DNA of 64,000 nt from the NCBI RefSeq assembly GCF_030144855.1, contig NC_082710.1, forward strand, positions 154,132,001 through 154,196,000, written 5' to 3'. The position numbers and the translations under genes are program-made. The notes under the pieces were generated by a model that saw only the letters and a list, made by a program, of their open reading frames with translations, had not been told where the DNA came from and ran no database searches. Below, piece by piece: positions 25,177-25,314 of the stretch (position 1 is the stretch's first letter; every line of letters starts with the position of its first letter). The stretch is from Hypanus sabinus. Lineage: Eukaryota.

Positions 25177-25314
25177 CTCGCCTTCCTTAGCAGCCAACGA
25201 CAATGATAATGATGATGGAAATGGCCACGATCCCGAGTGAAATCCAGTGCCACTCTCTGAAAATGCTGGAGCTACTCAGCAGGTCAGGCTGTATCCAGGG
25301 TTGAGTTCCCCGCA
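25177..25314 (-). CDS. MHC class I-like gene A, connecting peptide/TM exon (138 bp): VRGTQPWIQPDLLSSSSIFREWHWISLGIVAISIIIIIVVGC*GRR, with in-frame TAA at 25189-25187
   Basis: cctcag|TG ... CGA G|gtatgg; homologous to the gene B TM exon (shared TCAACCCTGGAT start, CGAG|gta end). Confidence 0.85.

Follow-up and report, generated by a model that had tools for sequence, protein, structure and literature searches.

How a retroelement fragment came to lie in a coding exon of an immune gene, and whether it helps to anchor the gene's product in the membrane, is the question raised by this locus of the Atlantic stingray, Hypanus sabinus. The window analysed here is a stretch of 64,000 nucleotides of contig NC_082710.1, in which gene A and its paralogue, gene B, share a strand, gene A being the downstream one of the two. 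Positions are those of the window, and features are on its minus strand unless indicated. The original prediction held that a 42-bp fragment of a Penelope-associated repeat had been captured in frame in the TM exon of gene A, and that its serines, together with a nonsense codon, could create a GPI signal.

Gene A is a non-classical MHC class I (class Ib) gene. Its exons were placed using the open reading frame listing, the splice sites, the reading phase and Pfam. The alpha1 exon (42339-42593) and the alpha2 exon (30414-30686) both gave MHC_I family matches above the curated cut-off (PF00129, E = 4.8e-7 and 1.1e-21, respectively). They are followed by the alpha3 exon (29824-30087), which encodes a membrane-proximal C1-set Ig domain (PF07654, E = 1.4e-10), and then by the connecting-peptide/TM exon (25177-25314). 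This last exon, 138 bp long, reads V-RGTQPWIQPDLLSSSSIFREWHWISLGIVAISIIIIIVVGC-stop-GRR. Its boundaries are ag/TGCGG...GGCGAG/gt, and its splice sites and phase fit both the alpha3 exon and the corresponding exon of gene B. All gene A exons are in phase 1, and alpha1 to alpha3 form an open frame of ~263 intact codons. The alpha1-alpha2 intron (30687-42338, ~11.6 kb) contains a LINE with an RT ORF (~35.3-38.9 kb), and the alpha3-TM intron measures 4.5 kb in gene A as compared to ~370 bp in gene B.

In gene B, the alpha3 exon (60395-60658), paralogous to that of gene A, precedes a TM exon devoid of the insert (59933-60028; 96 bp, 32 codons). The exon limits, 138 versus 96 bp, confirm that the TM exon of gene A is longer by exactly 42 bp, as had been proposed. 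Because the upstream intron, the first 22 nt and the last 10 nt of the exon, and the downstream intron all align between A and B, the two are the same exon. Two large tandem arrays flank the 3′ exons of gene B. One of them (~52900-60000) is rich in C and repeats at a higher order every 2978 bp (e.g. 54615 and 57593); the other (60400-64000, 70-74% GC) fills the gene B intron upstream of alpha3.

Using blastn within the window, plus-strand 25259-25295 matched 48501-48537 with 81.08% identity over 37 positions (E = 8e-6), in agreement with the 30/37 first counted. The similar copies noticed near 3143 and 20206 were recovered by blastn and motif matching at 3143 and 20204, and more copies of the motif were found at 2508, 12412 and, in reverse orientation, 12582. 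In a scan with the consensus of the 42-nt motif, the exon copy scored 36/41 and the real copies 35-37, the best score in 40 shuffled windows searched on both strands being 27/41. With a leave-one-out consensus made from the six other copies, the exon scored 34/40, five copies scored 33-38, and one decayed copy scored 26. The exon motif thus scores as well as bona fide copies, and the proposal that a TE fragment was captured in frame in a coding exon is upheld. That the similarity is due to chance, the extra residues having arisen by ordinary duplication or slippage, draws on the shortness of the stretch (about 34-42 nt) and is scarcely credible in view of an exon score equal to that of bona fide copies and well above the shuffled maximum, and of the blastn E value obtained within the window.

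The TE-derived core, which corresponds to the tail motif of a Penelope-like element, was delimited at 25259-25292 from blastn, the motif scan and the leave-one-out consensus. Its TE similarity extends into 25293-25300, and its orientation is that of the element's ORFs. A TE origin of the extra stretch of gene A is well supported by these comparisons. TE similarity reaching into the upstream intron (MAFFT alignment) was rejected, the intron stretch in question being homologous to the intron of gene B. An extension of the similarity into the membrane span is weak (p 0.03-0.04, six tests).

The name "Penelope-associated" was accepted because RT followed by GIY-YIG is a Penelope-like architecture. 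The 3′ part of one such element occupies 48495-49280. It comprises a GIY-YIG ORF (48894-49280), in which the motif GVVY...YIGET...EH is readable, followed by a tail of ~390 nt with the repeat motif at 48501-48542. A second, longer copy (3136-5976) has an RT ORF at 4325-5728, a GIY-YIG ORF at 3501-3959 and the tail motif at 3142-3183. In both copies, at 48.5 kb and 3.1 kb, the motif is found ~390 nt downstream of the GIY-YIG ORF, and at 3.1-6 kb an RT-like ORF of 468 residues precedes the GIY-YIG ORF on the same strand. The Pfam matches of the RT ORF (RVT_1, E = 0.01, 16 bits) and of GIY-YIG (PF01541, E = 0.12) are below the Pfam cut-off. In the Atlas feature search, the RT ORF scored 0.97 to eukaryotic RT/DUF8422 clusters, and 77% of the members among the structural neighbours of the top hit carry GIY-YIG. 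No hammerhead ribozyme was detected in the window at the Rfam gathering score, or at E up to 10 in 48400-48700 and 12300-12700, although minimal PLE hammerheads may escape the Rfam models. When folded, the element tails and the exon did no better than shuffles.

The element ORFs share the strand of gene A. Homology among copies breaks off no more than 6 nt from the motif in two of them and persists for ~40 nt in others. Solo tails of 39-70 nt are present in the window at 20198-20250, 12410-12477 and 12545-12583. Since the first of them is a solo copy of 53 nt, very short copies of the element tail do occur. The two tail copies within 12410-12583 are inverted, ~100 nt apart, and form a long hairpin, for which the Rfam matches were plant-miRNA-like and sub-threshold only (34.7 bits versus a gathering score of 135).

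Relatives of gene A were recovered with a profile that combined a shark class I protein with the translated exons of genes A and B. A protein search of 50% representatives gave only matches of 49% identity or less and did not bring them out. By blastp, the spliced product of gene A matched a Hemitrygon akajei protein (P0170) at 86.5%, a Mobula birostris protein (P0174) at 81%, P0183, from a 1479-nt Logan RNA contig (L001), at 80%, and two Pristis pectinata proteins at 62%. A long stalk is visible in P0170, P0174 and P0183 (QPWIQPDLLSSSSIFSEWRWI..., ...SSSSIFSGLCWI... and ...QPNLPRSSSTFSCWHWI..., respectively). L001 is a spliced cDNA in which the junction of alpha3 with the TM exon falls at the same acceptor; at the DNA level it contains the insert in full. 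Overall, the insert is common to Hypanus, Hemitrygon, two Mobula species and a spliced RNA contig. Gene B lacks it, and so do the Mobula B-type gene, the two Pristis proteins recovered and the shark class I proteins inspected. Indeed, the B-type gene of Mobula birostris (P0269) has a short stalk. In Mobula hypostoma, P0265 is a 738-residue gene model that fuses a B-type unit to the A-type unit following it; devil rays have thus kept the B-then-A tandem order seen in the window.

The four long-stalk genes group in the alpha3 tree as an A-type clade (support 99/94) that is sister to gene B plus Pristis (93/86), the joint clade being supported at 96/95; L001 groups with Mobula. In a survey of 123 class I units whose TM span could be detected, 115 had stalks of 0-11 residues. 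The six units with a stalk of 21-24 residues are all A-type; Hypanus A, likewise A-type, has 22. From the tree and the survey, the insert is derived on the A-type stem. Read together, the aligned genes place the insertion after the A/B duplication and before the Dasyatidae/Mobulidae split. Pelagic stingrays have been dated at or before the K-Pg boundary (PMC6485097), and the minimum age of the insert is therefore about 66 Myr.

The original prediction had reasoned that if orthologues without the TAA also had the long stalk, then gene B would have lost it. Such orthologues exist (Hemitrygon, the two Mobula species and the RNA contig), but loss in gene B does not follow, because the B-type, Pristis and other inspected class I stalks are short and the A-type genes are monophyletic. 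An ancestral long stalk, lost by deletion from gene B, the Mobula B-type gene and Pristis, is a formal possibility only, and a very improbable one. The segment is repeat-derived, and the shark, skate and chimaera class I proteins of the set have short stalks. Moreover, either a precise 51-nt deletion restoring a single copy of the octamer that flanks the insert (see below) or several independent deletions would be needed, and the short B plus Pristis clade is sister to the long A-type clade.

The insertion had been described as a unit of 42 bp. This figure turns out to be a net value, 51 minus 9, since the addition itself amounts to 51 nt (17 codons). The added stretch, QPDLLSSSSIFREWHWI (25242-25292), was delimited from peptide layouts and consists of 43 inserted nt and the second copy of an 8-nt target. 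The imperfect flanking duplication that had been pointed out is present. Copy 1 of the putative target-site duplication, CCCTGGAT (25293-25300), is shared by gene B at 60013-60020, and putative copy 2, CACTGGAT (25242-25249), matches copy 1 at 7/8 bases. From the start of one octamer to the start of the other is 51 nt (the octamer itself and the 43 nt that separate the pair), which is what a repeat-flanked insertion would add, rather than 42. Past the second octamer the sequence is host-like again, with WI(S/P)L in A-type genes and WIPL in gene B, and WI is duplicated at the protein level around the insert. The octamer pair and the resumed host sequence are as expected of a target-site duplication flanking 43 inserted nt.

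The layouts of the exon, drawn from predicted proteins and one cDNA, agree with this size. Short-form exons have 8+24 codons (gene B, Pristis P0186 and P0188, Mobula B-type P0269), and the long form has 8+17+24 codons, that is a 49-codon exon, in Hemitrygon P0170 and in the second unit of M. hypostoma P0265. The other A-type layouts are 8+17+23 in M. birostris, 8+17+21 in Hypanus and 8+17+20 in L001. Because short forms have 8+24 codons and Hemitrygon and M. hypostoma 8+17+24, the ancestral addition is 17 codons. The Ile-rich membrane span later underwent small in-frame losses, of 9 nt in Hypanus. A single in-frame insertion of 42 bp (QPDLLSSSSIFREW), the remainder of the exon being collinear with gene B, would match the exact net difference between A and B in the Hypanus genome, and MAFFT sets 5+37 gap columns. 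We nevertheless consider it improbable: the A-type exons of Hemitrygon and M. hypostoma exceed all short forms by 17 codons, not 14, the A-type membrane blocks range from 20 to 24 codons between species, with 21 in Hypanus, and the flanking octamers have the 51-nt spacing given above. In the same membrane span (25215-25235, minus strand), the A-type relatives P0170, P0174 and P0265 have an Arg (..FGIRAIS..) versus a Val in Hypanus (..LGIVAIS..). Charge within a TM helix is usually a sign that the helix pairs with a signalling adaptor or that it anchors only marginally.

Between the motif and the octamer are 9 nt (AGAGAGTGG) that match poorly the GT-rich continuation of the element; the copy at 20204 runs on ...CACTCAGGATTCC past the motif. 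The 51-nt addition might alternatively be TE-derived filler, either element DNA or cDNA, used in double-strand-break repair with GGAT microhomology junctions. The second octamer would then be element sequence, which would leave microhomology only and no target duplication. In line with filler capture, the consensus reads ..TAGAT.. versus ..TGGAT.. in the host at the 5′ junction, the copy at 20204 has CACTCAGGATT a few bases past the motif, and the post-motif tails show weak similarity in local alignment (p about 0.03-0.04). However, this tail sequence is found in only 1/6 copies, and the p-values do not survive six tests. In addition, host-like WI(P/S)L comes directly past the second octamer, as a target duplication predicts. 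We regard capture as filler as the less likely course and retain an insertion of 51 nt flanked by a target-site duplication.

The run of serines ascribed to the insert is indeed supplied by it, as TE copies translated in the exon's frame give PDLLSSSSIF-like peptides. The solo tail copy at 20198-20250 reads P*MLPGLLSSSSIL in this frame, and other element copies read PQMLPDLLCVSSIF and PQLLPDLLNVPSIF; PDLLSSSSIF, including the four serines, is therefore the element's own sequence. The four TE-encoded Ser codons, AGT AGC TCC AGC (25265-25276), are candidate omega, omega+1 and omega+2 positions. The element has TAG at the junction where the host has TGG, and beyond the junction its sequence stays open in that frame. 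Through the 17 extra residues (QPDLLSSSSIF..W.WI), the stalk that separates alpha3 from the membrane has grown from about 5 to about 22 residues. Hypanus, Hemitrygon and M. birostris have the same QPDLLSSSSIF, from which M. hypostoma departs at 1 residue and L001 at 4/11 positions.

Between Hypanus and L001, dN/dS is 0.75 over alpha1-alpha3 and >1 in the insert, where 17 codons are too few for this value to carry weight. Preservation of the frame had been taken as a hint of selection. Retention in frame is indeed observed across the relatives, but purifying selection on the residues is not, with this ratio in the insert. As to a putative function, the longer Ser-rich stalk might be O-glycosylated and would raise the ectodomain. 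The TE-derived segment also makes an acceptor-like site, cagcattttcag/AG, inside the exon (25257-25263, minus strand). If this internal site were used, 58 nt would be skipped, the frame shifted, the TAA bypassed and the membrane span lost. The predicted isoforms of Mobula birostris (P0266, P0267, P0264) include anchorless products. In isoform X5, the TM exon is skipped (..WNY-DWWFD), and in isoform X4 the exon is entered 5 nt late, with a TGA stop within the TE-derived CCTGACC (..WNYGNSTLDTA). The Mobula B-type gene has an exon-skipping isoform too.

The TAA stop of gene A (25187-25189) lies 10 nt before the donor site. At the aligned position, gene B (TAC) and Hemitrygon encode Tyr, and Mobula and L001 encode Cys. 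All insert-bearing relatives recovered have a sense codon at this position and a cytoplasmic tail. The comparison across species, which had been called for, gives the order of the two events: the insertion came first, and the TAA is seen in Hypanus only, the relatives having Tyr or Cys. It shows the TAA, as judged from the aligned genes, to be a much later change than the insertion. Because every insert-bearing relative recovered has a sense codon and a tail, the insert was not kept for a GPI signal, and the suggested tie between its retention and such a signal has to be abandoned. Downstream of the TAA, a 33-nt cytoplasmic exon (24673-24705, VHVNRNSDPAL) has good acceptor and donor sites. A candidate Ser-rich tail exon, LPGSSSSSNASN, is found at about 23797-23835, an exon that may be off by 1 nt as compared to Hemitrygon, and another candidate tail exon, VIRLVVDWMRN (22031-22063), has a homologue that is the terminal coding exon in L001. 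The usage of tail exons, for which there are three candidates downstream of the TAA, varies between species.

With the TAA, the Hypanus product ends ...LLSSSSIFREWHWISLGIVAISIIIIIVVGC. According to a simple rule check, as distinct from a trained predictor, this C-terminus has the anatomy of a GPI signal, S-S-S / IFREWHW / ISLGIVAISIIIIIVVGC. The omega candidates are S277 or S278, with Ser at omega+1 and omega+2. The spacer has 7-8 residues, and the terminal hydrophobic tail, of 18 residues, ends the protein and has a mean Kyte-Doolittle value of 3.0. By removing the cytoplasmic tail, the Hypanus TAA might thus unmask a GPI signal in which omega would be a TE-encoded serine. The anatomy of the C-terminus fits this possibility, as does the TM/GPI switching through tail loss known for several receptors (Qa-2, FcgRIIIb, MICA*008). 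However, the same serines, spacer and hydrophobic span are found in relatives that are ordinary type I membrane proteins. A span of 18-21 residues is a competent membrane anchor even without a tail, and the Hypanus transcript may be degraded. We therefore consider GPI anchoring unlikely. Slightly less probable still is the full scenario, in which a Penelope-encoded serine run, part of a stalk at least about 66 Myr old, would have been co-opted later as a GPI omega site in Hypanus by a single nonsense mutation. GPI anchoring is thus a speculation, though one open to test. If co-option is true, a TM class Ib molecule would have become lipid-anchored with a TE-derived attachment site. No GPI-linked MHC class I molecule is known to us outside mammals, and this one would then be the first.

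Rather more probable, by a small measure better than even, is that the TAA marks a null or decaying allele, or gives a tail-less membrane-spanning protein, the stalk being irrelevant to anchoring in either case. The TAA is located 10 nt before a junction, with at least one well-formed exon beyond (24673-24705), and under the 50-55-nt rule it may expose the message to nonsense-mediated decay, provided that more junctions are present downstream. A protein search with the TM-exon ORF of gene A gave no match among proteins of 37-117 aa, and one with its alpha3 ORF gave none among proteins of 94-297 aa (0.55-1.75x query length in both cases). Among the 120 profile-search matches listed, no gene A product was present, and Hypanus sabinus class I proteins did appear. 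The dN/dS of 0.75 over alpha1-alpha3 also fits a null or tail-less product. Conversely, the ~263 codons of alpha1-alpha3 are intact, and a product of another size, or one missing from the data, would have escaped the three protein searches.

Overall, we favor a history in which a Penelope-tail insertion of 51 nt on the A-type stem was followed, in Hypanus, by the loss of 9 nt and the change from Tyr to TAA; we put its probability at about 0.8. In this history, a very short copy of a Penelope-like tail entered the connecting-peptide part of the TM exon on the A-type stem, past the A/B duplication and ahead of the split between whiptail stingrays (Hypanus, Hemitrygon) and devil rays (Mobula). 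The copy lies in the orientation of the gene, about 43 nt of element and an 8-nt target-site duplication making up the 51 nt. We infer that it was inserted by 5′-truncated target-primed reverse transcription. As 51 nt keep the frame and no element stop is in frame downstream, the exon was spliced as before, with 17 residues added. The longer stalk has since been passed on in frame in every A-type gene recovered, and it is seen in the mature mRNA of a relative. Later in Hypanus, 9 nt were lost in the poly-Ile membrane span, and a Tyr codon changed to TAA at the cytoplasmic face, removing the tail.

The locus thus offers a clean, datable retroelement fragment located directly in a coding exon of an immune gene, the frame having been kept across the whole ray order. 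The insertion roughly quadruples the stalk of one class Ib lineage, and it provides a shared-derived marker that distinguishes A-type from B-type genes in the myliobatiform MHC. The GPI-like C-terminus of the Atlantic stingray combines an old layer, the TE-derived stalk, with a recent one, the stop.

Several known systems can be compared with gene A. In elasmobranchs, a non-classical class Ib cluster of UBA genes flanked by c4 and rxrb has been described (PMC10751288). Genes A and B are likewise divergent class I genes in tandem. Like 5′-truncated copies of non-LTR and Penelope-like elements made by target-primed reverse transcription, gene A appears to have the 3′ tail only, together with a short imperfect repeat of the putative target, and solo tails lie nearby; it differs from them by the 9 unexplained nt between the motif and the repeat.

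GPI-anchored class I-like molecules include mouse Qa-2, ULBP/RAET1 and MICA*008. The predicted Hypanus A product resembles them in its ectodomain, small residues, short spacer, terminal hydrophobic stretch and lack of a cytoplasmic tail. In contrast, every recovered A-type relative with the same stalk has a cytoplasmic tail, and the stalk therefore did not evolve as a GPI signal. As in TE cassettes and in Alu/SINE exonisation, a repeat fragment is translated in a conserved host protein and has been kept for tens of Myr. Unlike exonisation, in which an intronic sequence becomes an exon through cryptic splicing, gene A shows direct insertion in an existing coding exon, the survival of which is explained by a compatible length (51 nt) and frame. 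A further difference is that the donor is a Penelope-like element, a type that to our knowledge has rarely been reported as a source of coding sequence. TE-derived coding sequence is a known phenomenon, of which gene A is a new, well-dated example.
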